A stretch of 64,000 bases of DNA, taken from assembly GCA_002269645.1 (NCBI GenBank), contig NIVC01001379.1, positions 124,001-188,000 of the forward strand. Direction: 5' to 3'. Of this stretch, positions 35,926 to 63,277 are shown in pieces; the stretch's first letter is position 1, and the number at the start of each line of letters is the position of its first letter. The notes under the pieces were generated by a model that was not told the origin of the DNA, searched no databases, and saw only the letters and a list, made by a program, of their open reading frames with translations. This DNA is from Macrostomum lignano (lineage: Eukaryota). Position numbers and translations under genes: made by a program.

Positions 35926-38900
35926 ATGGCAGCCAACTTTCTCTCACTGCCCCCACCTGAGCCATTTTCAGTATCAGCAGACCCACACAACGCGGGCAAG
36001 CGCTGGAGTCAATGGGCAGACCGCTTTGAAGACTTCATCGATGCATCAGGCATCACCAACGAGAAGCAAAAGTGCAAACTACTCAGCTACACAGCAGGCA
36101 AGGAAATCGCCGACATCATCCGCGAGGAGGCCAAGCCTGCAGCGGCCACAGAGGACGGCCAAGTCACCCTCAAGCAGACGCTGGAAGCTTTGAAGACATT
36201 CTTCAACGGAAGAAAGAACATAGTATTCGCCAGATATCAGTTCCGCCTATGCACCCAGGCCACCGGGGAGTCCATCGAGTCCTGGTACGCCAGACTGCGC
36301 ACTGCGGCAGAGCCGAGCGACTTCGAGAAGCTGAAGGACTCGCTCATCAGAGACCAGCTCGTGGCAACCTGCAGCTCTGACAAGCTGCGCAGGCGGCTGC
36401 TTCAGGAGGCGAACATCAGCCTGGAAGAGGCCTTGCGAAAGGCGAGGGCATTCGAGGCTGCTGAGGAACAAGCCACCGAGATGGAGAAGACAGACTCGCA
36501 CGTGGCCAGCGTTGCCAAGGGCGACAAGGTGAGAACAAACAGGTGTGGCCCGGCTCAGACGACCAGCAGGCCCGGCGACCAGCAGCAGCGCACCTGCTAC
36601 CGCTGCGGCGAGAAAGGCCACGCTACCTGCGACGCTGCCAAGGGCAAGATCTGCCACAACTGCGGCAAGCCCAACCACCTCGCTCTTGCCTGCCGTCAGC
36701 CTCGGCAGTCAAACAGCAGCCGGATCCCACAGCAGCAAATCAGCACCAATGCTGTATTCACAGCTGCCGACGGCTCCGTCAACGAGGATGTGTTCGCGCT
36801 GTACAACCGCGACAAATACCCATCCGACGTCTCACTGACTGTGCAGGTGGCAAACCGGCAGCTTCCCATGATGATTGACAGCGGAGCCAGCTGCAGCATC
36901 ATGAGTCTCGGCACCTTCAGAGCGCTCAGCCTGCCAAGCCCACGCCCAACAAGAGCCGAAGTTCGCGCCTACGGGGTACCGACACCTCTCAGGATTGTGG
37001 GTACCGCCGATCTTGACATCCAAGTGGGATCTGCCAGAACAACCGCGACCTTCCACATCATGGACGGCGACGGGCTGACGATACTAGGGCGTCAGCCCGC
37101 ATTCAAGCTAGGAGTGCTGAAGATCCAGCGACCTGAAGCTACCAAGCCGCAAAACATAAACGCCATCGCCGACACCACACCCTCCGAGCAGTGTAGCGAC
37201 CCCCAGCTCAAGGCCATCCTGCAGAGGCACAAAGAAGTCTTCAACGGACGAGCTCAAGGCTTTGGAAGAGCAAGGCATCATTGAGGCAGTCAAAGGTCCT
37301 AGCGCCTGGGTGTCACGCATGGTGGTGGTGCCCAAGGGCGACGGTGGCGTTCGAATCTGCCAGGACCTCCGTGATCTCAACGCTTTCGTCATCCCAGAGA
37401 AGCAGCAAATCCCCACGCTGGACGAAATCACCGAGGAAATAGCAGACGCCAAGCTGTTCAGCGAACTCGATATCCGGAAGGCTTTTTATCAGATCCCAGT
37501 CCACGAGAGCAGCCGTCACCTCTTCACCTTCAGCACGCCCCTCGGACTGATGCGGCTCAAGAGGTTCAGCATGGGGTTCACAAATGCCTCGGAAATCCTT
37601 CAACGAGTCATGCTTGGCATCCTCAGCGGCATCGACGGCGTCCGGTGGGCGCACGACGACGTGGTGGTATACGCCTCCGACCTGAAGCAGCACCATGAGA
37701 GGCTGGACGCCTGCCTTCAGCGCCTCCGAGAGTTCGGGATCACCATCAATCAGGACAAGTGCAGGTTCGCCCGACCGACTGTCGAGTTTCTCGGGATGCG
37801 CCTGACCGCCCGGGGCATGCAACCGGCCACCGAGAAAATTGACGCCATGCAGAACTTCCGAGAGCCCTCCAACGTGGCCGACGCCCGCTCTTTCCTGGCA
37901 AAGTCATCCCAAACTTCGCTGACCTCGCGGCCCCACTCCGGCAGCTAACGAAGAAGGGCCAGGCCTGGGAGTGGACAGAAAAACACAAAGCGGCGTTCAA
38001 CGGCATCAAGAAGGCATTCTCAGACGCGGACACGCTGGCCTTTTTCGACCGCAGGCTGCACACGGAGCTCCTGGTGGACGCATCGCCGATCGGCCTCGGC
38101 GCCATCCTCACGCAGCGGCAGCCAGACGGCAACAGCAGACCCGTCGCCTACGCCAGCAGAGCCCTCTCGCCGGTGGAGCAGCGGTACGCGCAGATCGAGC
38201 GGGAGGCGTTGGCCATCAAATTTGGGTGTCTCAAGTTTGAGCACTATCTGGCTGGCGACCCAGACTTCACCGTGGTGACGGACCACCGACCGCTCGTGCC
38301 GCTTTTCAAGCCTGGCTCCCGTCCGCCACCGCGGATTGAGCGTATGGCACTGCGCATTCAGCATCTCCGCTTCAACCTGCTCTACCGGCCAGGCTCGACC
38401 AACCTGGCTGACCTGCTGAGTCGGCAGCCACTGCCAGAGCGGCGTCGGAATGTCGGTGAAGAGCTCGACGCCGCCTTCATCAACGCCGCGTCGACCGGGG
38501 CCGTGCCGAAGGGCTTCAGTCTCGACCAGGTTCGGGAAGCATCGCTCACCGACAGGGACGTCCAGGCGGCGCTGAACGCGATTCGAACCGGCCGCTGGGA
38601 CATGCGAGCGGCGGCCCAGCGCTCCTTCAAGTCCATCAGCAGCGAACTGTCGGAAAGCGACGGAGTATTACTCCGCGGTGACCTCATCGTCATCCCCGAG
38701 TCGCTGCGCAGGCCGATCCTTCAACTGGCGCACACCGGTCATCTGAGCGCCGACCGCACCCTTAAACGCCTGCAGACGAAGGTGTGGTGGCCTCGGATGC
38801 GCAGCGACTGCGAGCTCTTCGTCCAGTGCTGCACACTGTGCCAGGCTGCGGCCACCGGATTGCGACAGACACCATTGAGGCCGACAGATATTCCGGACGG

Positions 38901-41389
38901 TGCCTGGCTGCTGCTAGGTATGGATTTCTACGGCCCAGTGCAGGGCCAGATGCTCCTGGTCACCACCGACTTGTATTCAAAATACCCAGAAGTCAATTTT
39001 CTCAACTCGACGACGGCGGAGAGCGTGATCCCCCACCTGCGGAGGCTGTTCGGCAGATACGGCGTCCCGATTGAGGTGGTCACCGACAACGGCCCGCCAT
39101 TCAGCTCGGCAGCTTTCCGCAGCTAATTCCTCGCTTCGTACGGCATTCAACACCGCCTCATCTGCCCGCTGCACCCAGAATCCAACGGAGCGACGGAGCG
39201 AGTCAACCGCAGCATCGGGAAAGTGATTCAGACGGCAGTGGCCGAAGGTCGTAACTGGCGGGAGGCTATCGAGGACTGGCTGTTGGCGTTCCGCACGACA
39301 CCACATCGAGCGACCGGCCGCGCACCCGCTGAGCTACTCATGGGCAGGACGATGAACGACGGCATCCCGACCATCAAACCATCACAGCTCATCGACGTTA
39401 ACCATGAAGAGGTGCAGAGCTGGCACAGAAACTATGTCCAAGACATGAAGGCGCGCTTCGATGATCGCAAGGGTGTCAAAGAGCACGGCGTCAGAGTCGG
39501 CAACAAAGTTCTGCGAAAGAAGCAACCACGTAACAAACTGCAGCTGCCGTTGGAGCCACATCCTTGGACAGTCAAGCAGGTCCAGGGAGACACGTGTGTC
39601 CTGCAACGCGGCGAACAGTCCTGCATGCGCCACGTCTCGCAGCTGCGGCCCCTGGTCGGAGACCCTGCCGGCCAACCTGCCGGAGAGCCTGCCGGCCAGC
39701 CTGCCGGCCAGCCTGCCGGCCAGCCTGCCGGCCAACCTGCCGGAGAGCCTGCCGGAGAGCCTGCCGGCCAACCTGCAGGAGAGCCTGCCGGCCAGCCTGC
39801 CGGAGAGCCTGCCGGCCAACCTGCCGGCCAGCCTGCCGGAGAGCCTGCCGGCCAGCCTGCCGGCCAACCTGCAGGAGAGCCTGCCGGCCAGCCTGCCGGA
39901 GAGCCTGCCGGCCAGCCAGGTCCAGGTCCAGGGAGACACGTGTGTCCTGCAACGCGGCGAACAGTCCTGCATGCGCCACGTCTCGCAGCTGCGGCCCCTG
40001 GTCGGAGACCCTGCCGGCCAACCTGCCGGAGAGCCTGCCGGCCAGCCTGCCGGCCAACCTGCCGGAGAGCCTGCCGGAGAGCCTGCCGGCCAACCTGCAG
40101 GAGAGCCTGCCGGCCAGCCTGCCGGAGAGCCTGCCGGCCAACCTGCCGGCCAGCCTGCCGGAGAGCCTGCCGGCCAGCCTGCCGGCCAACCTGCAGGAGA
40201 GCCTGCCGGCCAGCCTGCCGGAGAGCCTGCCGGCCAGCCTGCCGGCCAACCTGCCGGCCAGCCTGCCGGCCAACCTGCCGGAGAGCCTGCCGGCCAACCT
40301 GCAGGAGAGCCTGCCGGCCAGCCTGCCGGAGAGCCTGCCGGCCAGCCTGCCGGCCAGCCTGCCGGCCAGCCTGCCGGCCAACCTGCCGGAGAGCCTGCCG
40401 GCCAACCTGCAGGAGAGCCTGCCGGCCAGCCTGCCGGCCAACCTGCCGGAGAGCCTGCCGGCCAACCTGCAGGAGAGCCTGCCGGCCAACCTGCCGGCCA
40501 GCCTGCCGGCCAACCTGCAGGAGAGCCTGCCGGCCAGCCTGCCGGCCAACCTGCCGGAGAGCCTGCCGGCCAACCTGCAGGAGAGCCTGCCGGCCAGCCT
40601 GCCGGCCAACCTGCCGGAGAGCCTGCCGGCCAGCCTGCAGGAGAGCCTGCCGGCCAGCCTGCCGGCCAACCTGCCGGAGAGCCTGCCGGCCAGCCTGCCG
40701 GAGAGCCTGCCGGCCAACCTGCCGGCCAACATGCCGGAGAGCCTGCCGGCCAACCTGCAGGAGAGCCTGCCGGCCAGCCTGCCGGCCAACCTGCCGGAGA
40801 GCCTGCCGGCCAACCTGCAGGAGAGCCTGCCGGCCAACCTGCCGGCCAGCCTGCCGGCCAACCTGCAGGAGAGCCTGCCGGCCAGCCTGCCGGCCAGCCT
40901 GCCGGAGAGCCTGCCGGCCAACCTGCAGGAGAGCCTGCCGGCCAGCCTGCCGGCCAACCTGCCGGAGAGCCTGCCGGCCAACCTGCAGGAGAGCCTGCCG
41001 GCCAAACTGCCGGCCAGCCTGCCGGCCAACCTGCAGGAGAGCCTGCCGGCCAGCCTGCCGGCCAACCTGCAGGAGAGCCTGCCGGCCAGCCTGCCGGCCA
41101 ACCTGCCGGAGAGCCTGCCGGCCAGCCTGCCGGAGAGCCTGCCGGCCAGCCTGCCGGCCAGCCTGCCGGCCAACCTGCCGGAGAGCCTGCCGGCCAACCT
41201 GCCGGAGAGCCTGCCGGCCAACCTGCAGGAGAGCCTGCCGGCCAACCTGCCGGAGAGCCTGCCGGCCAACCTGCAGGAGAGCCTGCCGGCCAACCTACCG
41301 GTCAGCCCGCCGGTCTATCCAGCGGTAGCATCGCCACGCGAGAACACCAAAGAGCTGCCCGTAACAGAGTGCTCAGCTACAAATTGTGA
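35926..41389 (+). pseudogene. Disrupted gag-pol polyprotein of the Gypsy element
   Basis: Zinc knuckles CYRCGEKGH and CHNCGKPNHLALAC; protease MIDSGAS; RT (RICQDLRDLN, WAHDDVVV); RNase H (VDASPIGLGAIL, YAQIEREALA); integrase HHCC and DFYGP/TDNGPPF/ERVNR. Lesions: deletion and frameshift near 37248 and 37898, in-frame TAA at 39124, and a tail duplication near 39920. Confidence 0.92.
39664..41308 (+). repeat. 12-bp coding minisatellite encoding (PAG[Q/E])n in the integrase C-terminal tail
   Basis: Roughly 130 units of CCTGCCGGCCA(A/G), CCTGCCGGAGAG or CCTGCAGGAGAG, split by a duplicated 90-bp unique segment. Confidence 0.95.
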
Positions 41390-46973: not shown

Positions 46974-47306
46974 TCAGGGCAGGAAGGCCGGCCTGATGAC
47001 CCACTCGGGGGTGCCGGCAGGAATCGGCCGCTGACTCCGGGTGGCCTCGTCGCGGACGCACTTGCCGAGCTGGGCGCGCTGCTTCACCGTGGCAAAGCGG
47101 CGCATGAACGCCTCGTCAAGGCTCCGCTTGATGTCGCGCACCCGGTCAGACTCCCAGGCCAGACAGCGGACTCGCAGCGTCTCGTCCTCTTCTTCCTCAT
47201 CTGATGAGGTCAGATCGCGGGTGAGCACGATTCGGTAATGCTCAAGATCGTCAGGCGACAGGTTCGGCAGTAGAGTCTCGAAGGCCTTCTGACGGCGGCT
47301 CAGCTT
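46974..47306 (-). CDS. Gene B terminal constant exon (phase-0 acceptor)
   Basis: Pyrimidine tract ...CCTAAATATGCAG|AAG CTG AGC; open to TGA at 46974. Confidence 0.8.
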   Translation of the reverse strand, partial: KLSRRQKAFETLLPNLSPDDLEHYRIVLTRDLTSSDEEEEDETLRVRCLAWESDRVRDIKRSLDEAFMRRFATVKQRAQLGKCVRDEATRSQRPIPAGTPEWVIRPAFLP

Positions 47307-50300
47307 CTGCATATTTAGGTACAGGAAGGTAGAGAAGCGGTATGAACTACTGTAAGTAGCGAAATTGAATTTTACATATTTTCAAAAATTTTACTTCATA
47401 AAATATTTCCAAACAGCTGAAATTGATAAATATTAGGTGTTAAATTGACGGGGCAAAATCCGACAGTGTGGAATCTGGCACAAACTAGGTAGGTCATGGT
47501 GAATGACCACAGAATGATCCTTTTGATAAGCATCAATAAATTCAATGATATTCAATGATATTGCTGACTGAGTAGCAGAGCTCACTCAGAGACATTGGGG
47601 ATTGAGTAGCGGAGCTCACTCATGGACATTGGGGATTGAGTAGCGGAGCTCACTCAGGGACATTGGGGATTGAGTAGCGGAGCTCACTCAGGGACTCACT
47701 CATGGACATTGGGGATTGAGTAGCGGTGCTCACTCAGGGACATTGGGGATTGAGTAGCGGTGCTCACTCAAGGACATTGGGGACTGAGTAGCGGTGCTCA
47801 CTCAGGGACATTGGGGATTGAGTAGCGGAGCTCACTCAGGGACTCACTCAAGGACATTTGGGATTGAGTAGCGGTGCTCAATCAGGGACATTGGGGATTG
47901 AGTACCCAGAGCTCACTCAGGGACATTGAGCATTGAGTAGCTCAGTCACTCAGACTCTCCAACCAGTAGCAAGACTCTCTCACCCGCTTCCATCTGCCAC
48001 TCTTTGCAGCAGACTTTCTACGCACAATAATCCACTTAAGTTCGTAAGCAAAGTATTTTGAAATTTTGCCTGAAAATTGAATTATCAGAATTAATCTATT
48101 TTCAAGCAGAGTATAAAAAGCAAAAAACTTACAATACTATTCAAGCGAGTTTGCCATGTCAGCCCAAAAGAGCTACGTTTAAATTTTTTATATTTAATAA
48201 GACCTGATGGCACAAAAACTTTTTTTATTTAGTAGATCATTTTAAGTTTTAGGACTACTTGCATTAGTACATGTGTATGCAGAAGATGGAAACAGTGTAG
48301 GTACCCAAGGCCCAGTGTCAATGTACATTTGTGGGGCTTGTGCCAGTTCAGTGGGGGAAGGGAGACACTGTACGGTAAGGGAAGGCCCAGTGTCAATGTA
48401 CATTGGTGGGGCTTGTGCCAGTTCAGCGGGGAAGGGAGACACTGTACGGTAAGGGAAGGCCCAGTGTCAATGTACATTGGTGAGGCTTGTGCCAGTTTAG
48501 CGGGGAAGAGAGACAGTGTACGGTAAGGGAAGGCCCAGTGTCAATGTACATTGGTGGGGCTTGTGACAGTTCGGCGCGGGGAGAGACAGTGTACAAAAAG
48601 TCGAGGCCCAGTGTCAATTTACACTTGAAAAAAATCTAGTCAAAAACCGATCTGGAAGGATGCCTTGTGGCTGTTTTAAATTCTCATAATTACCGACTTC
48701 ACTCGATAAGAGCGCCAGGCACGCCTTCGCTTATCCATAACAAATTTTCTCTCCGAGTCAAATGACGTCTTCATCTTGTCGCTGGCAGCTGGGGGAATCG
48801 ATTTGTAATAGATAATAACACAAATAAAATTTACAGTGGGAGACTAAAGCTAGCAAGGGCAGAGATTGACAGAGACAGGCAGCTTAAGACAGGCAACTGA
48901 CCACGCGCAATCGGGCAGACTTTCTGGCTGTCCGCCGGTTGTACAAAATCATATGGGCCAATCGGCTGTGAAAAATTTCCACGTTAGCTAAAATAATTAT
49001 AATAGCAATATAATTGATATACAGATAACTGCAGTAATTAGCGCACAAGCCCACACTGAAAATGCTGCTGCCTTAAAAAACGCTGCAATATGAATTTGAT
49101 AATTCCTATCGTCCAAATTTTGAATAATGCTGTTTTTAGCTTGCAAGTGGGAGATGGCTATAAGCATTGAATATTAATTAAATGGAAATTGTCATTGAAA
49201 CCTTAAAAACCTCCAGGAACTCCATCTCCGCACACACAGTGCACATCGCAGATACTATGCCACTCAGGCATATTCAATACATACTTAGTAAAACAGCTTT
49301 CTACTTTCAGTTCAGTAGCAAAGAAGAATACATAAGCTATTTTATAAGAATAAAGGCCGCTGAAATGACTTTGATAAGTTTAGAAGCCCAAGCTTGCAGG
49401 CGTAAACAATTTGCTAGCTAATTAGTTAAGCAGTAATGTACATTAGCCAGTCCACTGAAATGTACATGGCAGCTTTAGGCTGGAATTCCGAGAAAGGCAA
49501 TAAAAATTGGGCGTAGTGTGTAAAGGGGGCTGTTGGAGGGTTTAAGCTAGGGGGGTAAGAGCCAATAAAAAGAGCCTTGGCTTTAAAAATACCATAAAAT
49601 GCTTCTGTTTAGCTAACTACTGAACTGAAAGTAGTTTATACGAAACGTGCTTTGTGGCCCATCTAGTTATTATCTATCTCACGTAGATCTTTGGTGCACA
49701 CACAGACAAACTGGCAGGCCACACACATCTCCCAACACAGGCACTAACCACGCGGAGTCGGCCAGCTCGTTTAGCAGTTCTCCGATTAGACAATACAATA
49801 TTGCCCAGCCGCCTGTGGAACTGTTCTGTGCTGGCTAAAATATTTCATGAGAAAATATTTATATATACATATATGCTAATGTATATAGATCTGCTTTTAA
49901 AAGCAAATTAGCAGAATGCTGTCACAGTGCTGCCAAAAAAAACGCTGCTGCTTTTTTATTTAAAAAATAATTGCATGGTGGAGTTGTGTTTTAAACTGCC
50001 TCAGAGGCCAGGGACCACTGGAAGGTCAGGTGCTCAGGACTAACCTAGCTGTTCAGTCTCAGGTGTTCAGGACTAACCTAGCTGTTCAGTCTCAGGTGTT
50101 CAGGACTAACCTAGCTGTTCAGTCTCAGGTGTTCAGGACTAACCTAGCTGTTCAGCCTCAGGTGCTCAGGACTAACCTAGCTGTTCAGTCTCAGGTGTTC
50201 AGGACTAACCTAGCTGTTCAGTCTCAGGTGTTCAGGACTAACCTAGCTGTTCAGCCTCAGGTGTTCAGGACTAACCTAGCTGTTCAGCCTCAGGTGCTGA

Positions 50301-53300
50301 GGACTAACCTAGCTGTTCAGTCTCAGGTGTTCAGTCTCAGGTGTTCAGGACTAACCTAGCTGTTCAGTCTCAGGTGTTCAGGACTAACCTAGCTGTTCAG
50401 TCTCAGGTGTTCAGTCTCAGGTGTTCAGGACTAACCTAGCTGTTCAGTCTCAGGTGTTCAGGACTAACCTAGCTGTTCAGTCTCAGGTGTTCAGGACTAA
50501 CCTAGCTGTTCAGTCTCAGGTGTTCAGGACTAACCTAGCTGTTCAGTCTCAGGTGTTCAGGACTAACCTAGCTGTTCAGTCTCAGGTAGGTTTTCAGGAT
50601 TTCTAGAATTAATCAAAACGTCCTACTAAATAACCAGCTTACACTTTTTGTTCTGAACCATTTCTTAGCACTTTTGCGATGCTTCTCAATGGCAATGCGC
50701 TGAGCTGTGAACCAGGCGGAACAAGTCTCTAGTTTAAAAAAGTTATTAAGGTAAAAAAAATTTTTAAAAGACGACGCTAAAAGCAGAGCCTATTCACAAC
50801 CATAGCGTCAAAGAGGTTTCAACAGAAACAAAAAGATTTCACCCCATACTACTACAAGTAGGCAGCTTACATTACGAATTCGACCGGATTTTTTTGCACT
50901 TTTACGATTTCTCTGCACTGTAACGCTCTGCGATTGAAACCACGTGAGTAGCTTGTCCGTCAGCTCTGACGCGTCATTAAAATATTATTCAATAAAGCTA
51001 GTTGAATAAAGATTAGCTAATTCTGAGAAATTATAGATATCGCGTTGTAGAGGCTTGCGTGCAATAGAAAATATTGAAAAAATAAGTTTTTTATTAAAAA
51101 CACCAGGAATTTACTGTTTTCCATCGTTTGGATCGTTTGGCACTGATTCTATGCTTAGCCATGGTGACGCCCTGGGTGACAAAATATCTATTGATTGCGC
51201 CTGACGGATTGCGGCGGGGTGTTGCACCTTTAAAACACTTATTTAACAATATAAACAGCAAATGGCAGCAAACCGCCTGCTGAACAGAAAGATAATAGAG
51301 CGCGTTGAAGAGGCAATTTTCACAACTTACAGCCTTTTGCCTGTTACTCTTGCGCCAAATTAATCTGGAACGCAAACTAGACTGCTGCAGGAAACCGTAT
51401 TCCTTCTGACACGTGGCTGCGTGAGTGCGGAATATTTGTTTCTTAGAATTTATATTTAAATATCGTTTCTTATAACATACTTTAATAAAACAAGCTATGA
51501 TCTCAAAATGGCTCGTTTCACAAACTCTCAAAGCTTTCGCTATTGATTTGATTTTATAAATGTAATTTTAGAAAAAAATCTGTTGTTTCGAAGTTTCCGG
51601 ATATTGTAATCTCTTAATTGTAGATGACTAGCGTCTGTCTAAATGCACATAGGGTTGGGGGTGGGACTAGGCACAGTATTCTGTGGGACTAGCGTCTGTC
51701 TAAATGTACATAGGGTTGGGGTGATGACTAGCGTCTGTCTAAATGTACATAGGGTTGGGGTGATGACTAGCGTCTGTCTAAATGTACATAGGGTTGGGGT
51801 GATGACTAGCGTCTGTTTAAATGTACATAGGGTTGGGGTGATGACTAGCGTCTGTCTAAATGTACATAGGGTTGGGGTGATGACTAGCGTCTGTCTAAAT
51901 GTACATAGGGTTGGGGGTATGACTAGCGTCTGTTAAATGTACATAGGGTTGGGGTGGACTAGCGTCTGTCTAAATGTACATAGGTTGGGGTGATGACTAG
52001 CGTCTGTTAAATGTACATAGGGTTGGGGTATGACTAGCGTCTGTCTAAATGTACATAGGGTTGGGGTGATGACTAGCGTCTGTCTAAATGTACATAGGGT
52101 TGGGGGTAATGACTAGCGTCTGTCTAAATGTACATAGGGTTGGGGGTGGGACTAGCGTCTGTCTAAATGTACATAGGTTTGGGGGTGATGACTAGCGTCT
52201 GTTTAAATGTACATAGGGTTGGGGTGATGACTAGCGTCTGTTAAATGTACATAGGGTTGGGGTGATGACTAGCGTCTGTCTAAATGTACATAGGGTTGGG
52301 GGTAATGACTAGCGTCTGTTTAAATGTACATAGGTTTGGGGGTGAACTCAAAAGACGGTCACGTGATTCTACGATCTGGAAGCCTCAACAAAAGATTTTT
52401 TAAATACACGACTGAATTATTTAATAGCTTTTCCACCTTACTTGCGCACCTTTTCAATCATCTTTGAATTTCTTAAACTGGATTCCCCCAGCATTAAATA
52501 TCGACTTGATTGACTGAGTTTTTAAAACTACCAGGTTAGCTAGTATCTTAAATATAATGAGATTTATAGCATTAGCAGAAGTCTACAAAATCGGAGCACA
52601 TTATACTATTATTATCACTAATATAATACAATTTGTGGGACAATAAATATGACTACAACATTGAAGCCAATGCACAGAGGCCTGGTGAACCCCCCGGTTC
52701 CAGCAACTCGCTTGGCATGCTAAATCAATCGGAGCCGAGACTCACCATTGTTCGCCTGTAAAATTTGGCCACATTCCTACGATTAGACAGAACTGGCTGC
52801 CTATACTGTGAGTAGACGGAGCTTAGCACGGCTGCAAAATAGGCGATTGTGAGTGCCGAGAGATGCTCAGCTGTGCTGCTGCGACTGGGCTTGCGTTGCT
52901 TAATGTCTGATTAGCACTGCGGCTTGGCCCAGTGGGAGGCTGGCCCAGCAACTGAGGATCTGGGAGGCTGGCCCAGCAACTGAGGATCTGGGAGGCTGGC
53001 CCAGCAACTGAGGATCTGGGAGGCTGGCCCAGCAACTGAGGATCTGGGAGGCTGGCCCAGCAACTGACACTCTGGGAGGCTGGCCCAGCAACTGAGGATC
53101 TGGGAGGCTGGCCCAGCAACTGAGGATCTGGGAGGCTGGCCCAGCAACTGAGGATCTGGGAGGCTGGCCCAGCAACTGACACTCTGGGAGGCTGGCCCAG
53201 CAACTGAGGATCTGGGAGGCTGGCCCAGCAACTGACACTCTGGGAGGCTGGCCCAGCAACTGACACTCTGGGAGGCTGGCCCAGCAACCGAGGATCTGGA

Positions 53301-54511
53301 AGGCTGGCCCAGCAACTGAGGATCTGGGAGGCTGGCCCAGCAACTGAAGATCTGGGAGGCTGGCCCAGCAACTGACACTCTGGGAGGCTGGCCCAGCAAC
53401 TGAGGATAAGGGAGGCTGGCCCAGCAACTGAGGATCTGGGAGGCTGGCCCAGCAACTGAGGATATGGGAGGCTGGCCCAGCAACTGAGGATAAGGGAGGC
53501 TGGCCCAGCAACTGAGGATCTGGGAGGCTGGCCCAGCAACTGAGGATCTGGGAGGCTGGCCCAGCAACTGAGGATCTGGGAGGGTGGCCTAGCAACTGAG
53601 GATCTGGGAGGGTGGCCTAGCAACTGAGGATCTGGGAGGCTGGCCCAGCAACTGAGGATCTGGGAGGCTGGCCCAGCAACTGAGGATCTGGGAGGCTGGC
53701 CCAGCAACTGAGGATCTGGGAGGCTGGCCCAGCAACTGAGGATCTGGGAGGGGGCCCATGTACACGTAAGTCTAGTATTCGCTATAAAAGTCTGTCTAAA
53801 TCTGCAGATTTTTAAGAAGTGTTGCAAGCATAACGCAAAACTCAAATCGGAATCCAACAGCAAACATGAGAGCCAACAAGCCTACACCAACTGACGCTAA
53901 ATAGTATAGTTGAAGAAAACGACAAACAAAATGTTAAATTTATAATTTTAGGGAATAATTAATTAGGATAATTAATGCATACAATGGGCCGCACTTCTTG
54001 AACAGCCGGGACGCCAAAGTTCTGGCGCAGTGGGAGTCTGCACACCAATTTTAGAACCAAGTAGTGTATGTAGCTCAATATAAATTGCATTGACTCAATA
54101 AATTTTTACGATTATAAATCTGAGACACCTGGGCAGCGGCAATTATAACTAATTTTAAGCGATTTTTACGGCAGACTTGCAAACACTCGCTGGTTTCTTT
54201 CTTTCTCTGTAAACCTCTGCAACGCTATAGCTTAATAATTCAATTGAATACGGCAGTATAAGTTCATTTAAATAGACATGTAACATACAGGTAAGAAATG
54301 CAGTAAATATTAATTAACTTACTGCGCCAAACTTCAGCGTTTGCTGCAATGCGCGCGACACAGCCTGGGCCTGATCGATTACTTTCTTGGCCACCATCTG
54401 ATTCATCGGGTGCTCGAAGCTGAGCAAATTGGAGTGGCGTTGGGTTGGCTGCCTGTCTGTCTGTGTGTGTCTGTCTGTTCTGTCTGTCTGTCTGTCTGTC
54501 CGTCTGTCTGT

Positions 54512-54582
<71 letters not shown>

Positions 54583-54774
54583 TAGTGTCTGTGTGTCTGT
54601 CTTAGTGTCTGTGTGTATGTCTGTCTTAGTGTCTGTGTGTATGTCTGTCTTAGTGTCTGTGTGTATGTCTGTCTTAGTGTCTCTGCGTGTCTGTCTTAGT
54701 GTCTGTGTGTCTGTCTTAGTGTCTGTGTGTATGTCTGTCTTAGTGTCTGTGTGTATGTCTGTCTTAGTGTCTTG

Positions 54775-54809
<35 letters not shown>

Positions 54810-57247
54810 GTCTGCCTGTCTGTGTGTCTGTCTGTCTGTGTGTCTGTCTGTCTGCCTGTCTATCTGTCTGTCTGTCTGTCTGTGCGGCAGCATGAAGCAA
54901 AGGCACAACTCACGGTTTAGCAAAGTCGAACAGGTGTGGTCCGCTGCCTCGCAAATTCTTATAAGTGTCCTTCAGAAGATTCTGGAATTCCCAAGACATT
55001 CAAAGTAATTATATATAAAAACATTAACTTTTTATTGGGTCACTGGCTCAATCCCATATTTTAAGAAATTTTTTGAACAAGAATTGCATTCTACATTAGC
55101 TACTACGAGGGGCGTACCGAAAGTTTTGAGATACGCCGAAACCACAAATATCTGAAGCAAAATTTCTGTCACAATTTTTTGAAGTAGTTGCCACCAGCTT
55201 GCACGCATTTCCTCATCCGGTGAAACCACTGCGTTCAGGCTCCAGCCCACTGTTCTTCTGGCACTGCTGACACCACCTGCTCGAACTCGAATCTTGCTGC
55301 TTTAGGGCTCTCAAACCGAGTCCCACGCAGTTGGATCTTCACCAAAGGGAAGGGAAAGAAGTCGCAGGGTGCCAGGTCAGGGAATATGCTGGATGCGTCC
55401 AACTGGACTTCATTCTCGGCCAGAAATGCCAATGTTGCAACAGCCATGTGCGCACTGGCATTGTTGTGGTGCAGCAGCAGGCCACGAAGTCCGGTGCGCA
55501 GCCGGCGTCTGCGCCACGCATCGAGCACGAGCGGCAGGCACTGGTTAGTATACCAGTCGGCATTGACTGTCCGCCTGTTTTGGAGCGCTACAGTCGCCAA
55601 TTGGCCGGCCTGGCTGAAGAAAGTCGCCACCATCTGCTTCCCGACGCTGCGGGCCCGCTTAACTTTCGTTGGAGTGGCATCGTCCGGAAGGAGCCAAACT
55701 GCAGAATGCTGCTTGGTTTCCGGGTCGTGCTGGCAGACCCAGGTCTCTTCGCCACTGATGATCTCCCAGCATCACTTTGAAGTCCCAGAATCAAATCTTT
55801 CCAGCATAAACTCGCACCAAAGCACCCTCTCCGCTTTCTGGTCCTCCGTTAGGTTGTGGGCACCCAGCGGGCACACCGCTTGGAGGCTCCCAGCTTGTCG
55901 TGCAGGATGGTCGTAACTGCTGCCGATCCAATGCCGAGAGCCTCTCTGACCTATGCACAGGTCACTCGCCGGTCCTCGTCAATCATTCTTCGGACAGCAG
56001 CGATGTTTTCGTCCGTGACAGCGGAAGCTGGACGTTCCGTCCGAGGCTCGTCATCAAGGCTGCTTCGGCCCCACTTACATTCGCTGTACCACCGAAAAAA
56101 CTATGGCACGTGAAGGGGCTTGATCTCCAAAGACAGCATGTAAAGTTTCAACGCACTGCTCCTACGTGAGACCTTTTCGCTGGTTGTAAACAATCATGAC
56201 TCGAAAGTCGCGATTTGTCACTTCATTGGAGCAAGTACAGTTTGGTAGGGGGTATCGTTTTTAAGGATGTGATTGTGAAAGATTGACAAAAGCGCAAAGG
56301 CTGAAAATTAATACTCAATCATCTTAAAGGTGGTACAGTATGTAAATAAAAATTCGTGCAGTTGTGATTTATGAGTCAGCCGTATCTCAAAACTTTCAGT
56401 ACGCCCCTCGTATAGTTAATAGCTAGCTAGTAGCTAGGCCTTTCCATTTGCTTATTTCCGCTACACTGACTGCTACAAGAGCTCCATGAAATGCTTTCGC
56501 TACGTTCATTAATTAACAAGCCAGGCTGTCTATCTAATAAGGAAGAGAACTGAGAGTTTTCAATAAATTTAATTCATACTACTCAGAAAGTTCATATGGT
56601 AAGTAGGCAGTGCGAATTTTAACTCTTTTTTGGCACTCACCCGAACATCCACGTTGCTGGGGCCGCCAGCAGCGCAAGCGCCGGCGCCGCCGCTGAAGCT
56701 GCTCTCCTCCTCCAGCAGCAGACAGTCGTCGTCTTCGTCGTCCCCGGGAAACGATGAGGCTCCCCCAGCATCGCTAGCAAAGCTGTCAACGTGGCCGAGA
56801 GTCTGCTGATGAAGCTGCTGGTGCTGCTGTTCCAGCTTCACGCCGAGTAGCGGCTCCTTCGGCTCCAATTTGCACGCGCCGCTTTGCCGACGGCGGACTG
56901 GCGCCATCGCCGGCGCCAGCAGCAGCGGCAGCACTGGAGCAACTGGCCGCGGCTGAGTGATGCTGGCGGAGACTCTGCTGCTGCTGTTGCAGCTGCTGCA
57001 GCTGTTCCTGCAGCTCCCGATTGGAGGACTGCACCTGACCAGCGCACGGCTGCATCACATCAACAGCCTGGTGCTGCAGGTTGCAGATGAGGCGCACAGC
57101 GGCCACCAGTTCGTCCAGCGTCATGCTGTCCAGCAGCATGCCGGCATTGAGCAGAGTGGACTCAAACAGGGTCAGCGCGGAGAATGAGGACTGAGCAGCT
57201 GACGGCTGCTGCTGATGATGGATAGGTAGCACGGATGCGGCAGACAT
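46974..57247 (-). CDS. Gene B: C14orf93/DUF4616-like protein with a mutually exclusive cassette array. Constant exons 57247-56641, 54981-54914 and 54419-54323, one cassette, then terminal exon 47306-46974.
   Basis: Spliced product ...[40 protein letters not shown]...AANAEVWR-[cassette][10 protein letters not shown]...LTSSDEEE...[16 protein letters not shown]...RSQRPIP. This follows the FDFS...YF..RR...MSDEE..P..R...L..LD pattern I recall for C14orf93-type domains. Needs 1-nt corrections near 56873 and 54351. Confidence 0.72.
47570..47945. repeat. 34-bp minisatellite in the gene B cassette region
   Basis: (GAGTAGCGGAGCTCACTCAGGGACATTGGGGATT)n. Confidence 0.9.
47984..48069 (-). CDS. Gene B cassette exon B9 (86 nt, phase 1 to 0): (S)[28 protein letters not shown]
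   Basis: TTTTCAG| ... |GTGAGA; open frame; YF followed by a basic tail. Confidence 0.8.
48133..48203 (-). CDS. Gene B cassette exon B8 (71 nt, phase 1 to 0): (S)[23 protein letters not shown]
   Basis: CCATCAG| ... |GTAAGT; open frame; shorter and more divergent than the others. Confidence 0.55.
48300..48620. repeat. About 70-bp tandem repeat in the gene B cassette region
   Basis: Recurring GGCCCAGTGTCAATGTACATTGGTGGGGCTTGTGCCAGTTCAG. Confidence 0.85.
48694..48788 (-). CDS. Gene B cassette exon B7 (95 nt, phase 1 to 0): (T)[31 protein letters not shown]
   Basis: TTCCCCCAG| ... |GTAATT; the only open frame. Confidence 0.75.
48902..48987 (-). CDS. Gene B cassette exon B6 (86 nt, phase 1 to 0): (T)[28 protein letters not shown]
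   Basis: ATTTTAG| ... |GTCAGT; clear paralogue of B5. Confidence 0.82.
49749..49834 (-). CDS. Gene B cassette exon B5 (86 nt, phase 1 to 0): (T)[28 protein letters not shown]
   Basis: ATTTTAG| ... |GTTAGT; paralogue of B6 and B1. Confidence 0.82.
50030..50590. repeat. 33-bp minisatellite (CAGGACTAACCTAGCTGTTCAGTCTCAGGTGTT)n
   Basis: Tandem units visible directly. Confidence 0.95.
50643..50728 (-). CDS. Gene B cassette exon B4 (86 nt, phase 1 to 0): (K)[28 protein letters not shown]
   Basis: TTTTTAAACTAG| ... |GTAAGC; open frame. Confidence 0.82.
50871..50965 (-). CDS. Gene B cassette exon B3 (95 nt, phase 1 to 0): (K)[31 protein letters not shown]
   Basis: GCGTCAG| ... |GTAAGC; open frame; shares RKSAKK with B4. 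Confidence 0.8.
51115..51200 (-). CDS. Gene B cassette exon B2 (86 nt, phase 1 to 0; alternative in-frame acceptor at 51227): (S)[28 protein letters not shown]
   Basis: CCGTCAG| ... |GTAAAT; open frame. Confidence 0.8.
51620..52340. repeat. 39-bp minisatellite (ATGACTAGCGTCTGTCTAAATGTACATAGGGTTGGGGTG)n
   Basis: Tandem units visible directly. Confidence 0.95.
52746..52831 (-). CDS. Gene B cassette exon B1 (86 nt, phase 1 to 0; possible longer in-frame form including ...LTIAYFAA): (T)[28 protein letters not shown]
   Basis: TATTTTGCAG| ... |GTGAGT; shares VLSNRR with B5. Confidence 0.78.
52930..53755. repeat. 28-bp minisatellite (CTGGGAGGCTGGCCCAGCAACTGAGGAT)n
   Basis: Tandem units; source of the spurious 52823-53863 ORFs. 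Confidence 0.95.
54323..54419 (-). CDS. Gene B constant exon immediately upstream of the cassettes (ends in phase 1: TGG CGC A|GTAAGT)
   Basis: [23 protein letters not shown](F)AANAEVWR aligns with gene A YSARANVLAANRVIDKALELSRHKPANVEAWR if TT near 54351 is TTT. Confidence 0.7.
54450..54880. repeat. (TCTG)n compound microsatellite in a gene B intron
   Basis: Tandem units visible directly. Confidence 0.95.
55106..56410 (-). mobile_element. Degenerate mariner (Tc1/mariner) DNA transposon, 1305 bp, in gene B intron 1
   Basis: 30-bp TIRs CGAGGGGCGTAC(C/T)GAAAGTTTTGAGATACG with TA on both sides. Transposase remnants RWVPHNLT, ETW, LLHHNNA and PDLAPCDFF, with stops and frameshifts. Confidence 0.93.
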
Positions 57248-59112: not shown

Positions 59113-59416
59113 NNNNNNNNNNNNNNNNNNNNNNNNNNNNNNNNNNNNNNNNNNNNNNNNNNNNNNNNNNNNNNNNNNNNNNNNNNNNNNNNNNNNNNNN
59201 NNNNNNNNNNNNNNNNNNNNNNNNNNNNNNNNNNNNNNNNNNNNNNNNNNNNNNNNNNNNNNNNNNNNNNNNNNNNNNNNNNNNNNNNNNNNNNNNNNNN
59301 NNNNNNNNNNNNNNNNNNNNNNNNNNNNNNNNNNNNNNNNNNNNNNNNNNNNNNNNNNNNNNNNNNNNNNNNNNNNNNNNNNNNNNNNNNNNNNNNNNNN
59401 NNNNNNNNNNNNNNNN
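59113..59416. other. Assembly gap (304 N)
   Basis: Run of n; it truncates the gene A terminal exon. Confidence 1.
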
Positions 59417-62400
59417 TTGGGCAGACGGATCCAGCTCGTCCTTAATGAGCTCGTAGCTCTTCTGCGCCTGTTCAGCTTCTATAGGCGGACAGTGGAATTG
59501 GCAGGTTGGTTATCCAGGTTAATTGCATAAAGCGGCCGAGTGTGAAGAATGGAGCATCCACTCTCATCATTGCAGAGGAGTGACACACTAATATGAAAAG
59601 TGAAACAGTCACTGCAGAGGAGTGACACACATAATATGGAGAGTGAAACAGTCATTGCAGAGGAGTGACACACTAATATGGAGAGTGAAACAGTCACTGC
59701 AGAGGAGTGACACACAAATATGAAGAGTGAAACAGTCACTGCAGAGGAGTGACATACTAATATGAAGAGTGAAACAGTCACAGCAGAAGAGTGACACACT
59801 AATATGGAGAGTGAAACAGTCACTGCAGAGGAGTGACACACTAATATGAAAAGTGAAACAGTCACTGCAGAGGAGTGACACACTAATATGGAGAGTGAAA
59901 CAGTCACTGCAGAGGAGTGACACACTAATATGGAGAGTGAAACAGTCACTGCAGAGGAGTGACACAATATGAAGAGTGAAACAGTCACTGCAGAGGAGTG
60001 ACATACTAATATGAAGAGTGAAACAGTCACAGCAGAGAGGAGTGACACACTAATATGAAGAGTGAAACAGTCATTGCAGAGGAGTGACACACTAATATGG
60101 AGAGTGAAACAGTCACTGCAGAGGAGTGACACACTAATATGGAGAGTGAAACAGTCACTGCAGAGGAGTGACACACTAATATGAAGAGTGAAACAGTCAC
60201 TGCAGAGGAGTGACACACTAATATGGAGAGTGAAGCAGTCACTGCAGAGGAGTGACACACTAATATGGAGAGTGAAGCAGTCACTGCAGAGGAGTGACAC
60301 ACTAATATGAAGAGTGAAACAGTCATTGCAGAGGAGTGACACACTAATATGGAGAGTGAAACAGTCACTGCAGAGGAGTGACACACTAATATGGAGAGTG
60401 AAACAGTCACCGCAGAGGAGTGACACACTAATATGGAAAGCGAAACACCTACAACTGAGACACAGAGCGAGATCAGGTGGAGATAGTACATGCAGTAAAA
60501 TCGCAGGAGTGGCGCAACGTCTTTGGCAACAACGGCCCACATCTGTTACTAAGGCAACTCAGCCCATTTCGCTGACTCCTGAGGCTAAGATTCGGAAAAT
60601 CGTAGAAAAAAATGCCATTAAATGGCGAGCAGGTGAAAAATCACAGACCATTAATCGCCGTATGAATCGCTGGGTGTCCACATTCTTAACAACATTTCTG
60701 AACGGATACTTGAGATTCTTGGCGTAATAGTAGCGAAAGTACTTCACTGCTAGGGCTAAAAACAAACAAACAAGGATAGATAACCAACGCTAGACGCATT
60801 CGGATTAGAGAATGGCAGGACGGGCTGGTGCAGGCTGGTGGCTTCTATCTGGCCTATCCTAGCTTCTTTTTCTTCTTCAAAAATTCAAAACAGATTTAAC
60901 AAACGCACCAGACTCTGCCGCACGATATTCATTGTGTCAAGCTCGCGTTTGCGCAGCTTATAAGCCGAGCGCAAGTTTTTACTATAGTGGCCGCCGAAAT
61001 AACGCCTGGCTGCGTCTGAACAGTAATTCATTATGTATGATTATTAAGTTATCAATGTTCTAACTGGCTAGGTTCATTTGGATCGTTTGCAGGGCTGTTG
61101 TGCACTGTGCAGACAGCACAATATCTATTCCATTCCCAACTTTTAGCTGATAATTGGTCACGCGTTTGGCTAAAAATTATGAAGCTACGTTATGGTTACG
61201 AGTTATTCAACTATTTGTTTTAACTAAAATTGGCCTTAAAATCGGTGCAGCAAAGTGGCTGCGTATCATCTTGTACGAGTACAGCTACTTACCATTCTTT
61301 CTTTTCTGTGAACACTCACGAACAGTCGCAGTCATTCCCATTAGACACTCGCAATCCTTCCGTGAACAGTCGCAATCATTCCCGTGAACATTCGCAATCA
61401 TTCCCGTGAACAGTCGCAATCCTTCCCGTGAACAGTCGCAATCATTCCCGTGAACACTCGCAATCATTCCGTGAACAGTCGTAATCCTTCCCGTGAACAG
61501 TCGCAGTCATTCCCGTGAACAGTCGTAATCCTTCCCGTGAACAGTCGCAGTCATTCCCGTGAACAGTCGCAGTCATTCCGTGAACAGTCACAGTCATTCC
61601 CGTGAACAGTCGTAATCCTTCCGTGAACAGTCGCAGTCATTCCGTGAACAGTCGCAATCATTCCGTGAGACACTCACAAGTGAGGCTGATACGCGAAAAG
61701 AAGGCCGATGCCGTTTGAGATGCTGGTATTGCCAGTTCTTGAATACTGAGGACTGAGATAGCGATGGCTCTTGGCTGGACAAGCAAATTTAATTTAGCAT
61801 TGAGCTGTGTTGTTGCCTTTCAGAACTAGCAACAGGAAAACCCGAAGCGCTGGTACAAAAGAAGACTACAGGCATCGCAGGGTCTTGTGCGCTTAAATTG
61901 GAATTAGCTCTTTTACGGCATTGCTTACCAGAAACAGGTTGACAGAAGTTTTCATTTTCTCCTTCTGAAAGCCGTACTTCTGAGCCGGTTTCAAGGTGGA
62001 CGTATAATAAATCCGCAGGTATTTGTTGTAAACCGAGTCTGCGCGATAAGACCGCGTGCCAGCCGACGGTGCTTATGATTTCATTAATAATCCCAAAATC
62101 CCCCATTTCCCGAGCTGCACAACAGACTGTTGGGCAATTGGGCACGATTTGAGAGATTATAGCCAAATTTAGCTGATAATATTACAAAACTACTACTGCT
62201 GGCGATTATAATAAAATGCTAATTAGATAGTTGCGTCATACAAGGTTACGTAACAAGTGGCCAATGCATCGGCCATAGTGTTTGTCACAAGCATATTTAT
62301 TGAATTAGTTCACATTGCTAACTAACGGCCCTGCAACGCCCGTATTTTTAGAATATGCAATCAGGTGTACAGGTGTGGGAAATTGTACAACAATAGGCAA

Positions 62401-63277
62401 AATAATTAATATCCCTATGCATAAAAGTATTGTAAAGCAGGAATAAACTAATCGTATAGATACTAGAACCATCAAATAGATTATACGATATGTAGCGTAA
62501 ACAAATTTCTACACTACCAACCTTCTAGAGCAAATTACTTGCAATTATTGAACCCATTAACACTATAGTATGCCATAATATCGTCTACCGATATGTAGTG
62601 TAAACAACTTTCTGCACTACTAGCCTTCTATTGACATAAAGTTGACTACCGATATGTAGCGAATATTGATTTCTACACGACTTTCAATGAAAAAGTGCAG
62701 AATGGAGAAGCAGACTACTCACTGCGCCAGGCCTCAACATTAGCGGGCTTGTGCCTGCTCAGCTCCAGAGCCTTGTCAATAACCCGATTGGCTGCCAGCA
62801 CGTTGGCCCTGGCAGAATAGGGCGCGAGAAGTCGAACACGTTGGTGCCAGTCTCGTCTTTCAACACTCGATAGGCTTTGCGCAGGATGCCTTTCCATTCG
62901 TTTGACAGCTCGCCGCTAGCTGAAGAGTCCGCGCCGCCGCCTGCGCCACCAGCTCCGCGGCCACCGCTGAAGCTGGCCTGCTGATGCTGCTGCTGCTGGT
63001 ACAGCTGCTGGGACTGCGAGTGCTGATCGAAAATCAAATCGGCTTCCATCAGTACGCAATCGTCGTCGGAATCGATAATCTCGGGCTTAATTAAAGTTGA
63101 TGAAGCGGCTGCCGCAGTCGGACCGGTTGTTGCCAAGGCGCTATCTAGCAGCTTTTTACTACTGCTACTATTGCTACTGCTATTACCAACGTTGCCAATA
63201 GTGACAGCTGCCGAGCCCACAGAGGTTCCGGGCAGGTGAGAAGCGACTGACATTGACTGAGTAACCGGCGGTGGACA
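59417..63277 (-). CDS. Gene A: second C14orf93/DUF4616-like paralogue (5'- and 3'-partial). Constant exon 63277-62723 (phase-1 donor), one cassette, then constant exon from 59478 running into the gap.
   Basis: DDDCVLME...SFSGG...EWKGILRKAYRVLKDETGTNVFDFSRP(Y)SARANVLAANRVIDKALELSRHKPANVEAWR A|GTGAGT. Terminal exon TAG|KLNRR(Q)KSYELIKDELDPSAQ is homologous to gene [13 protein letters not shown]. Needs +1 nt near 62821 and 59467. Confidence 0.68.
59570..60440. repeat. 42-bp minisatellite (GAGTGACACACTAATATGGAGAGTGAAACAGTCACTGCAGAG)n
   Basis: Tandem units; source of several spurious ORFs. Confidence 0.95.
60649..60755 (-). CDS. Gene A cassette exon A4 (107 nt, phase 1 to 0): (T)LAVKYFRYYYAKNLKYPFRNVVKNVDTQRFIRRLM
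   Basis: TTTGTTTTTAG| ... |GTCTGT; open frame; KYF motif. Confidence 0.78.
60909..61015 (-). CDS. Gene A cassette exon A3 (107 nt, phase 1 to 0): (N)AARRYFGGHYSKNLRSAYKLRKRELDTMNIVRQSL
   Basis: CTGTTCAG| ... |GTGCGT; open frame; shares YF...Y.KNL with A4. Confidence 0.78.
61320..61670. repeat. About 22-bp minisatellite (TTCCCGTGAACAGTCGCAATCA)n
   Basis: Tandem units visible directly. Confidence 0.92.
61678..61774 (-). CDS. Gene A candidate cassette A2: either 61745-61678 (I)FKNWQYQHLKRHRPSFRVSASL, or 61774-61678 with +1 nt giving ...PQYFKNW...
   Basis: Ends in phase 0 at GTGAGT; acceptor choice is ambiguous. Confidence 0.45.
61929..62038 (-). CDS. Gene A cassette exon A1 (110 nt, phase 1 to 0): (N)SVYNKYLRIYYTSTLKPAQKYGFQKEKMKTSVNLFL
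   Basis: TTATCGCGCAG| ... |GTAAGC; open frame. Confidence 0.72.

Follow-up and report, generated by a model that had tools for sequence, protein, structure and literature searches.

Four candidate mutually exclusive cassette exons and a putative docking element in a gene of a Macrostomum-expanded protein family

Exon clusters whose members are chosen through pairing of a docking site with competing selector sequences have been documented mainly in insect genes (PMC6071210), with exon 6 of insect Dscam1 described by the Graveley docking site/selector model (PMC6071210). Small clusters of three to eight homologous exons under competing RNA pairings occur in insect 14-3-3zeta, Mhc and MRP1 (PMC6071210), and besides arthropod genes the docking/selector literature found also includes mammalian ATE1. 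Our literature search returned no paper joining Macrostomum lignano with mutually exclusive exons. Here we describe gene A of this flatworm, which lies on the minus strand of a 64,000-nucleotide (nt) stretch of contig NIVC01001379.1 (forward-strand positions 124,001 to 188,000, assembly GCA_002269645.1). We call the whole stretch the window and give window positions unless a locus is named; position x of locus L002, which lies on the same contig and matches the window with 100% identity, is window position 66908-x. A reading made earlier from the letters alone, the sequence-only reading, had proposed that gene A carries its own array of cassette exons.

Gene A shares with Dscam1 exon 6 the arrangement of tandem homologous exons between two constant exons, one conserved putative docking element downstream of the upstream constant exon, putative selectors before most variants, and a geometry that would permit one pairing at a time. 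Unlike Dscam1, it has four cassettes (one to about eleven across the family) as opposed to 48, belongs to a flatworm and not an arthropod, and encodes a small, probably intracellular helical protein instead of an immunoglobulin-domain receptor. It differs further in that its cassettes are 2 mod 3 in length, so that the frame would also enforce exclusivity, in that the docking core is common to paralogous genes, and in that the first cassette has no detectable selector and the pairing is predicted from sequence. The 14-3-3zeta, Mhc and MRP1 clusters are alike in size and principle, although their docking site lies downstream of the cluster (PMC6071210) and that of gene A upstream. As in exclusive splicing enforced by frame and nonsense-mediated decay (PMC6071210), zero or two gene A cassettes shift the frame and bring in premature stops. 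We consider it likely that gene A genuinely belongs to a family of uncharacterised, largely helical proteins that has expanded in Macrostomum, and that its cassettes are used exclusively through reading frame together with pairing of the Dscam1 exon 6 kind.

Gene A and its copies

In the window, gene A consists of a constant exon, four homologous cassettes and a terminal exon that is cut by an N gap. The first coding exon lies outside, at ~64501-64205 as extrapolated from locus L002.

62723-63277, minus strand: constant exon (CPPPVTQ...ANVEAWR and one further base, which opens the following codon), ending in phase 1, donor GTGAGT at 62722
61929-62038, minus strand: cassette A1, 110 nt, NSVYNKYLRIYYTSTLKPAQKYGFQKEKMKTSVNLFL, open from phase 1 to phase 0 with AG/GTAAGC borders, 110/110 identical to the intact copy
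61678-61774, minus strand: cassette A2, 97 nt in the window as against 98 nt (TKSHRYLSPQYYKNWQYRHLKRHRPSFRVSASL) in the intact copy, placed by alignment to the latter, with a 1-nt deletion at 61742/61741
60909-61015, minus strand: cassette A3, 107 nt, NAARRYFGGHYSKNLRSAYKLRKRELDTMNIVRQSL, recognised by open reading frame (ORF), phase and splice sites, 107/107 identical to the intact copy
60649-60755, minus strand: cassette A4, 107 nt, TLAVKYFRYYYAKNLKYPFRNVVKNVDTQRFIRRLM, recognised in the same way, 107/107 identical to the intact copy
59417-59478, minus strand: start of the terminal exon, tag|AAGCTGAAC (KLNRR-QKSYELIKDELDPSAQ), with a 1-nt deletion near 59465, running into the N gap
59113-59416, no strand: scaffold gap of 304 N, hiding what remains of the coding sequence (~325 nt) along with the 3' untranslated region of gene A and more, ~1.9 kb as judged from sister contigs

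The constant exon translates as CPPPVTQ...IIDSDDDCVLMEADL...NEWKGILRKAYRVLKDETGTNVFDFS / YSARANVLAANRVIDKALELSRHKPANVEAWR with an internal frameshift, and its amino acids are 96% identical to those of the intact copy and of the RNA-derived model P0004. Its end at ...VEAWR plus A before GTGAGT, in phase 1, agrees with what the sequence-only reading had drawn. All four cassettes run from phase 1 to phase 0 between canonical AG...GT borders, are of similar length (110, 98, 107 and 107 nt) and carry the common motif x[KR]Y[FL]xxxYxxxL[KR]. A scan for AG...GT segments open in phase 1 to 0 recovered A1, A3 and A4 exactly as they had been proposed. For the remaining candidate two acceptors had been offered; the outer one at 61774 stands, as it gives a motif-bearing cassette of 98 nt once the missing base is restored and has a 98-nt orthologue in paralogue F, whereas the inner acceptor at 61745 (68 nt) was rejected. 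In the intact copy, A2 scores 40 bits against a hidden Markov model (HMM) of A-type cassettes.

The intact copy is a second version of the locus (L003) on contig NIVC01000001.1, reached via protein P0004 (BOX15_Mlig028318g1, NCBI PAA94809.1), where genes C, A and B follow one another without a gap. There, gene A begins with an N-terminal exon (MATVG...ADEHAL), followed by a constant exon free of interruptions, the four cassettes and a full terminal exon of 128 codons, KLNRRQKSYELIKDELDPSAQTKFESVLTRDYTSSDEE...MKVRSLPWESDELRAVKQKLDE...RPPPPDSLTWAKNPAW... with its stop codon, the end of which is also given as ...WESDELRAVKQKLDE...RPPPPDSLTWAKNPAW... and stop. A partial third copy (L001), at the end of a further contig, starts inside the terminal exon of gene A and continues into gene B; nothing in the window corresponds to its positions 1-1669. 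The exon at 59478 is homologous to the terminal exon of gene B at 47306, as had been claimed, and the bracketed Q in the earlier translation is explained by the deletion near 59465.

C, A and B form a tandem of three family genes whose order recurs on other contigs. On NIVC01002989.1 (L007) a paralogous trio consists of a C-like gene, gene F and a B-like gene, and the paralogues D and E (loci L004 and L005) are each followed by a B-like gene. On the contig of the window, gene C (P0005, 471 amino acids) lies directly upstream of A and outside the window, at L002:1-767 (~window 66907-66141).

The assembly, Mlig_3_7, was built from PacBio reads with Canu and scaffolded by SSPACE, its annotation, and with it the NCBI gene models, derives from a genome-guided transcriptome, and the assembly paper compares assemblies by the number of mapped transcripts with intact ORFs (PMC5730564). 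The sequenced DV1 line carries extra chromosomes, and 180 Mb of the assembly lie in duplicated blocks at least 95% identical (PMC5730564). This background accounts for the N gap, the scattered 1-nt indels and the multiple near-identical copies. Given such redundancy and the N gap between A and B, these two could be one misassembled locus or two haplotypes of one gene, a danger that the sequence-only reading had itself raised. However, the constant regions of A and B are only 36-45% identical by tblastn, P0001 of gene B is ~38% identical to the protein of D, the closest paralogue of gene A, and the cassette classes of the two genes differ. The order C-A-B is also gap-free on NIVC01000001.1, a trio recurs on NIVC01002989.1, and L001 shows the end of A followed by B. 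The gap-free sister contig refutes the idea of alleles or misassembly, and we hold it to be vanishingly improbable.

The window and the intact copy were aligned outside minisatellites, with non-exon positions as the reference. Among aligned intron bases, 103/1714 differ (6.0%), with 65 further gap columns, as against no difference in the 324 nt of A1, A3 and A4 together (P ~2e-9); A2 shows one mismatch plus the indel. In A1, A3 and A4, conservation is no lower at synonymous than at non-synonymous sites (0 changes in 324 nt against ~6% expected), which may reflect constraint from splicing signals or RNA structure, or gene conversion limited to the exons.

Compared with the intact copy, the window copy carries three 1-nt deletions, between 62824/62823 within the constant exon (affecting FDFS-L-PYSAR), between 61742/61741 in A2, and near 59465 in the terminal exon. 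Frameshifting as they are, and together with the open gap, they mean that the window copy could be defective, and gene A has no annotated gene model on this contig; both would suit a decaying duplicate or pseudogene, with only the copy on NIVC01000001.1 functional. Set against the deletions are window exons conserved well above the intron level and an intact sister copy. The complete identity of A1, A3 and A4 against 6% intron divergence argues that both copies were constrained until very recently, and a 2-nt break in gene B on the same contig, together with private breaks of L001 in cassettes B4 and B6, has the look of PacBio/Canu indel errors. Because the indels are private and fall in otherwise perfectly conserved exons of a PacBio assembly, consensus errors are indicated: the three deletions are probably assembly errors, and decay of the window copy seems to us unlikely.

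The break in gene B lies in its last constant exon (54323-54412, minus strand), phase 1 in its intact reading, as an ORF-breaking 2-nt difference that reads GTCGCGCGCATT here and GT--CCGGCATT in two sister copies. The annotated gene B protein of this contig, P0003, is truncated because of it.

Reading frame and RNA-derived models

In the intact copy, the length of every gene A cassette is 2 mod 3. When the exons of that copy were joined in all 16 cassette combinations, only the four single-cassette mRNAs reached the conserved C-terminal domain, and mRNAs with 0, 2, 3 or 4 cassettes met a stop no more than 95 codons past the junction. With four cassettes the frame is restored arithmetically, yet a stop falls inside the misread cassettes. 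Under the proposed mechanism, exactly one of the four tandemly duplicated cassettes would be spliced in to give a full-length protein, and the frame would enforce exclusivity through premature stops before the C-terminal domain in all other combinations; mis-spliced products would be truncated and probably degraded. A cassette-skipped form is represented by model P0009 of paralogue F, which ends ...AWRKAEPSPEKLRGNQ, the terminal exon read out of frame.

The RNA-derived models carry one cassette each, with two alternatives in each of two paralogues: B3 (P0001) or B4 (P0002/P0003) in gene B, and E5 (P0008) or E7 (P0010, P0040) in gene E. Both gene A models, P0004 and P0021 (UniRef A0A1I8HIC5), have A4 directly after ...VEAWR. 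At the 3' side, a cassette is joined to KLNRRQK in D (D7, P0006), in E (E5, P0008) and in a further paralogue (P0020). Alternative use and correct 3' joining are thus documented within the family, from which A1-A3 would be expected to behave likewise.

The putative docking element and its selectors

The first clue to pairing was an inverted repeat in gene A, 62336-62324 with 61099-61087. Paralogue D has the same 15-mer, GGGCGTTGCAGGGCC, in its first variable intron, and approximate reverse complements of it in the introns upstream of its cassettes. The selectors emerged from reading the gene D introns and from duplex scans.

62327-62341 (extended 62323-62345), minus strand: putative docking site of gene A, GGGCGTTGCAGGGCC, 15 nt, identical in L002 and L003
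61868-61884, minus strand: putative A2 selector, GACCCTGCGATGCCTGT, ~92 nt upstream of the acceptor, RNAduplex -31.2 kcal/mol, z -5.3
61080-61099, minus strand: putative A3 selector, AACAGCCCTGCAAACGATCC, ~63 nt upstream of the acceptor, RNAduplex -25.2 kcal/mol, z -2.4, p 0.023
60819-60844, minus strand: putative weaker A4 selector, AAGCCACCAGCCTGCACCAGCCCGTC, ~63 nt upstream, RNAduplex -24.4 kcal/mol, z -1.7, p 0.05
54208-54231, minus strand: putative docking counterpart of gene B, GCTATAGCGTTGCAGAGGTTTACA / AGCGTTGCAGAGGTT, ~95 nt downstream of the gene B constant-exon donor

With up to two mismatches allowed, each of A (in both copies), D, E and F has exactly one sense-strand match to the 15-mer, which falls in its first variable intron. 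The single-cassette genes C, B2 and B3 have none, and apart from a variant in gene B the sense strand holds no other match in 139 kb. The equivalent introns of A and B contain docking cores, GCGTTGCAG[AG]G, that are homologous; a search with the core CGTTGCAG[AG]G, for which ~0.5 chance matches are expected in 277 kb (both strands of 139 kb), additionally picked up the gene B match at 54231-54208 and gave a single antisense match, which is the D5 selector.

We then took each 16-nt window of the first variable intron in turn and scored its pairing with the 130 nt preceding cassettes 2 to n, and in this unbiased scan the docking window ranked first in all five genes:

gene A: z -5.7, 346 windows
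gene D: z -2.75, 392 windows
gene E: z -4.6, 205 windows
gene B: z -2.5, 737 windows
gene F: z -3.6, 203 windows, a fresh test run after the motif had been defined

Over 21 A-type introns the real 15-mer pairs with a mean of -19.4 kcal/mol and 300 composition-matched scrambles with -14.2 +/- 0.9 (best -17.1), the real core beating 300/300; for gene A alone the values are -23.0 and -15.0 +/- 1.8 kcal/mol, and 0/300 scrambles equal the real site. The A2 selector is the strongest of gene A, with 0/300 shuffles pairing as well and 17/17 nt identical in L003, and the A3 selector is the partner of the docking site in the inverted repeat. Per-intron z values range from +0.5 to -5.3 (+0.25 to -5.3 for introns other than the first). 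Most cassettes of D, E and F have a best-pairing site, as a rule 49-100 nt ahead of the acceptor; duplex scans of the introns upstream of the cassettes gave no selector for E2 or F3. The gene B docking sequence shows significant complementarity upstream of B4, B5, B6 and B9 (of the CCTCT...CAACGC type). A search for shared 9-mers in the cassette-flanking introns did not reveal the selectors (best 4/7 introns, gene D), and Rfam recognised no family in the whole window.

We propose that the docking sequence after the constant exon would pair with only one selector per pre-mRNA, looping out the intervening cassettes and favouring the next acceptor, as at Dscam1 exon 6. Alternatively, the conserved 15-mer and the GCCCTGCAAC-like motifs might not be pairing partners at all, but splicing elements that bind proteins, or remnants of the duplicated unit. 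This would agree with the cassettes that have no selector and with the co-duplicated ATTATCAGCTAAA shared by the introns upstream of A1 and A3, and the pairing itself is predicted from sequence complementarity. Nevertheless, the motif ahead of the cassettes reads as the reverse complement of the first-intron element, not as a copy of it, and the docking element is single in every gene that has it, all of these genes having cassette arrays. Informally, we also observed that selectors of the CCTCT type match the B-type docking sequence CAGAGG, and those of the GCCCTG type match the A-type CAGGGC. These features make the alternative doubtful in our view.

Some of our own results weigh against exclusive use through pairing, in addition to the defects of the window copy and the domain searches given below. 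The A4 selector is marginal (z -1.7, or -1.0 with the 15-nt core alone), duplex scans found no selector for A1, D1 or F1, and selectors are convincing for only about half of the gene B cassettes, the complementarity upstream of the others being unconvincing. A reversed-sequence control paired as well as the real docking site; this control is uninformative because the CGTTGC core is mirror-symmetric, and the 300 scrambles were used instead. At the level of transcripts, a protein search with all four cassettes returned none carrying A1, A2 or A3 and only A4 in gene A models, and P0004 runs from A4 into the following intron. The use of A1-A3 is inferred, and so is the joining of a gene A cassette to the exon at 59478, a joining of this kind being seen for orthologous cassettes of paralogues (P0006, P0008, P0020).

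With A4 the only cassette in both gene A models, it might be constitutive, and A1-A3 might be unused relics of exon duplication or serve unproductive transcripts only. Relics would not be expected, however, to keep 100% identity (A1, A3) along with ORF, phase and splice sites against 6% intron divergence, nor to have orthologues of A1, A2 and A3 retained in D and F. The strongest gene A selector belongs to A2, and B and E each show two different cassettes in RNA-derived models. Constitutive use of A4 is, on balance, distinctly improbable, and exclusive use of all four cassettes remains our preferred reading.

Two further features lie in these introns. At 62486-62691 on the minus strand, between the constant-exon donor and the docking site, a hairpin-like direct repeat of ~42 nt occurs in three copies (…GTAGTGTAGAAATTTGTTTACGCTACATATCG…) and is also present in L003; its position recalls the stem-loop 'locus control region' of Dscam exon 6, a putative likeness. 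The introns upstream of A1 (62157-62180, minus strand) and A3 (61142-61175, minus strand) have ATTATCAGCTAAA and complementary TTGGCTA/TAGCCAA motifs in common, which suggests that the flanking intron was duplicated along with the exon.

The gene family, its proteins and their significance

The sequence-only reading had seen in these arrays a gene family and not a one-off, and our search for paralogues and count of cassettes bear this out. The best hits of an exhaustive profile search (418 proteins at E<=1e-3) were at least 15 mutually divergent M. lignano clusters, and a protein assembled from the gene B exons matched only M. lignano proteins. The clusters are laid out alike, with a helical region (FSPLTLFECT...) at the N-terminus, the acidic motif DDDC[VIL]L, a central module, one cassette, and then the motifs KL.RRQK...TSSDEE...LRVR.L.WES...K..LD...S.RP.P...W. 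In A, B, C, D, E and F the variable exon stands at the same protein position, after a conserved W-R/K, and in the same phase. Cassette counts from HMM-guided scans, all lower bounds, are 1 in C (110 nt, in a gene devoid of the docking motif), 4 in A, 7 in D, at least 8 in E, at least 6 in F, 9-11 in B and 1 in the B-like gene of L004.

The claim that this architecture predates the duplication of A and B is supported by the shared position and phase and by the homologous docking core. Separate diversification of the two repertoires, which had also been proposed, is seen in cross-comparison: an A-type HMM gives at most 4.7 bits on B cassettes, a B-type HMM at most 6.3 bits on the A-type cassettes of A, C, D and E, and gene A cassettes are longer, as had been noted (98-110 nt vs 86/95 nt in B). 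A3 and D6 are clear orthologues (alignment score 106), A1 has the orthologues D1 and F1 with a common TLKP signature, and A2 pairs with F3; these matches place the origin of much of the A-type repertoire before the latest duplications.

Amphioxus, a starfish, a bivalve, a hemichordate and a nemertean have more distant members, all named 'uncharacterized', among them Patiria miniata XP_038047259.1, Branchiostoma floridae XP_035658635.1, Glandiceps talaboti XP_078001082.1 and Lineus longissimus LOC135489509. What they have in common with the Macrostomum proteins is the helical module in the centre, …N…V…W/Y-S/T..E..A.K.YF.SL[KR]D..R…G….H[KR], together with KL.RR, an acidic SS[DE]E patch, RV[RK].L.WES…K..LD and S.RP.P…W; the N-terminal FSPLTLFECT... 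helical domain of Macrostomum is missing from them, and none has a Pfam family. The segment aligned with the cassette, A.K.YF.SL[KR]D..R...G....H[KR], is the most conserved central stretch of these proteins.

AlphaFold2 models of paralogue D place the cassette within a 56-residue helix, with a predicted local distance difference test score (pLDDT) mostly above 90; mean pLDDT was 68 for the full-length model and 87 for the domain model, from shallow alignments of 7-8 sequences. The 'variable helix' of the sequence-only reading fits these models. The cassette would make up most of one long, basic, aromatic-rich helix over the most conserved motif of the family (KYF..SL[KR]D...R in other phyla), and because it covers this central motif, isoforms should differ in one binding surface and hence in binding partner.

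Domain searches gave no name to this module. Pfam returned nothing above threshold for the constant exons, for 10 distant homologues or for 28 members (for these 28 none even at E<=10), sequence searches of the PDB with two profiles found no match, and Foldseek with full-length and domain models found no PDB hit with E<1. A weak Foldseek hit to the Zeste DNA-binding domain (Myb/SANT-like; E 6-8, probability 0.10, template-modelling score 0.42-0.46 on the target) is a lead only, and no significant sequence or fold match to a three-helix MADF/Myb-SANT-like domain of the Zeste type was found. A MADF-like consensus, tried for the PDB profile comparison, returned only homeodomains and designed proteins and was abandoned. 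In a word-indexed homologue search, a 28-sequence profile found 11 proteins only, with uninformative names, and the UniRef names of members (Exo70, Ras-GEF, BEN, MADF, TPR and others) were disregarded as contradictory within clusters.

The remaining features of the locus are repeats and mobile elements.

61320-61679, minus strand: intronic minisatellite of ~16 units of 22 nt, immediately downstream of the A2 donor (Tandem Repeats Finder, repeat search)
59567-60447, minus strand: minisatellite of 21 units of 42 nt, within the final gene A intron (Tandem Repeats Finder)
55104-56408, minus strand: mariner/Tc1-like transposon remnant in a gene B intron, with terminal inverted repeats TACGAGGGGCGTACTGAAAGTTTTGAGATACG and complement, and a broken transposase-like frame (7 stops in 55175-56230)
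35926-39126, plus strand: coding region of a Ty3/gypsy-type long terminal repeat retrotransposon, ORFs over at least three frames, matching, in order, gag/PNMA (including an aspartyl protease and a zinc knuckle), reverse transcriptase, and RNase H with integrase

A different minisatellite stands in each of most long A and B introns that were read (including 47560-54900), with units of 4, 22, 42 and several of ~28-40 nt, and repeat lengths vary among the genomic copies.

The type of mechanism is already known; what is new is the phylum, the protein family and a docking core shared among paralogues. More speculatively, and we think this a long shot, there may be a family-wide Dscam-like system in which a dozen or more paralogues of a pan-metazoan protein family each swap one long basic helix from an array of their own, with 4 to ~11 mutually exclusive exons, by way of a docking sequence that the paralogues have inherited. 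The helix might perhaps be the recognition helix of a divergent three-helix module of the Myb/SANT kind, and the family would then supply many dozens of factors that differ in binding specificity. Since M. lignano transgenesis works (PMC5730564), docking and selector mutants are testable in the animal. If exclusive use through pairing holds, the docking/selector mechanism would exist in Platyhelminthes and would be heritable by a whole paralogous family with a recognisable shared docking core. The paralogues would offer a natural series (1, 4, 7, at least 8 and ~10 cassettes) for studying array growth, and would bear directly on the model in which competing RNA structures arise when an exon is duplicated together with neighbouring intron sequence. 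One specific helix of a so far uncharacterised family of metazoan proteins would then be marked as a site of selected diversity.

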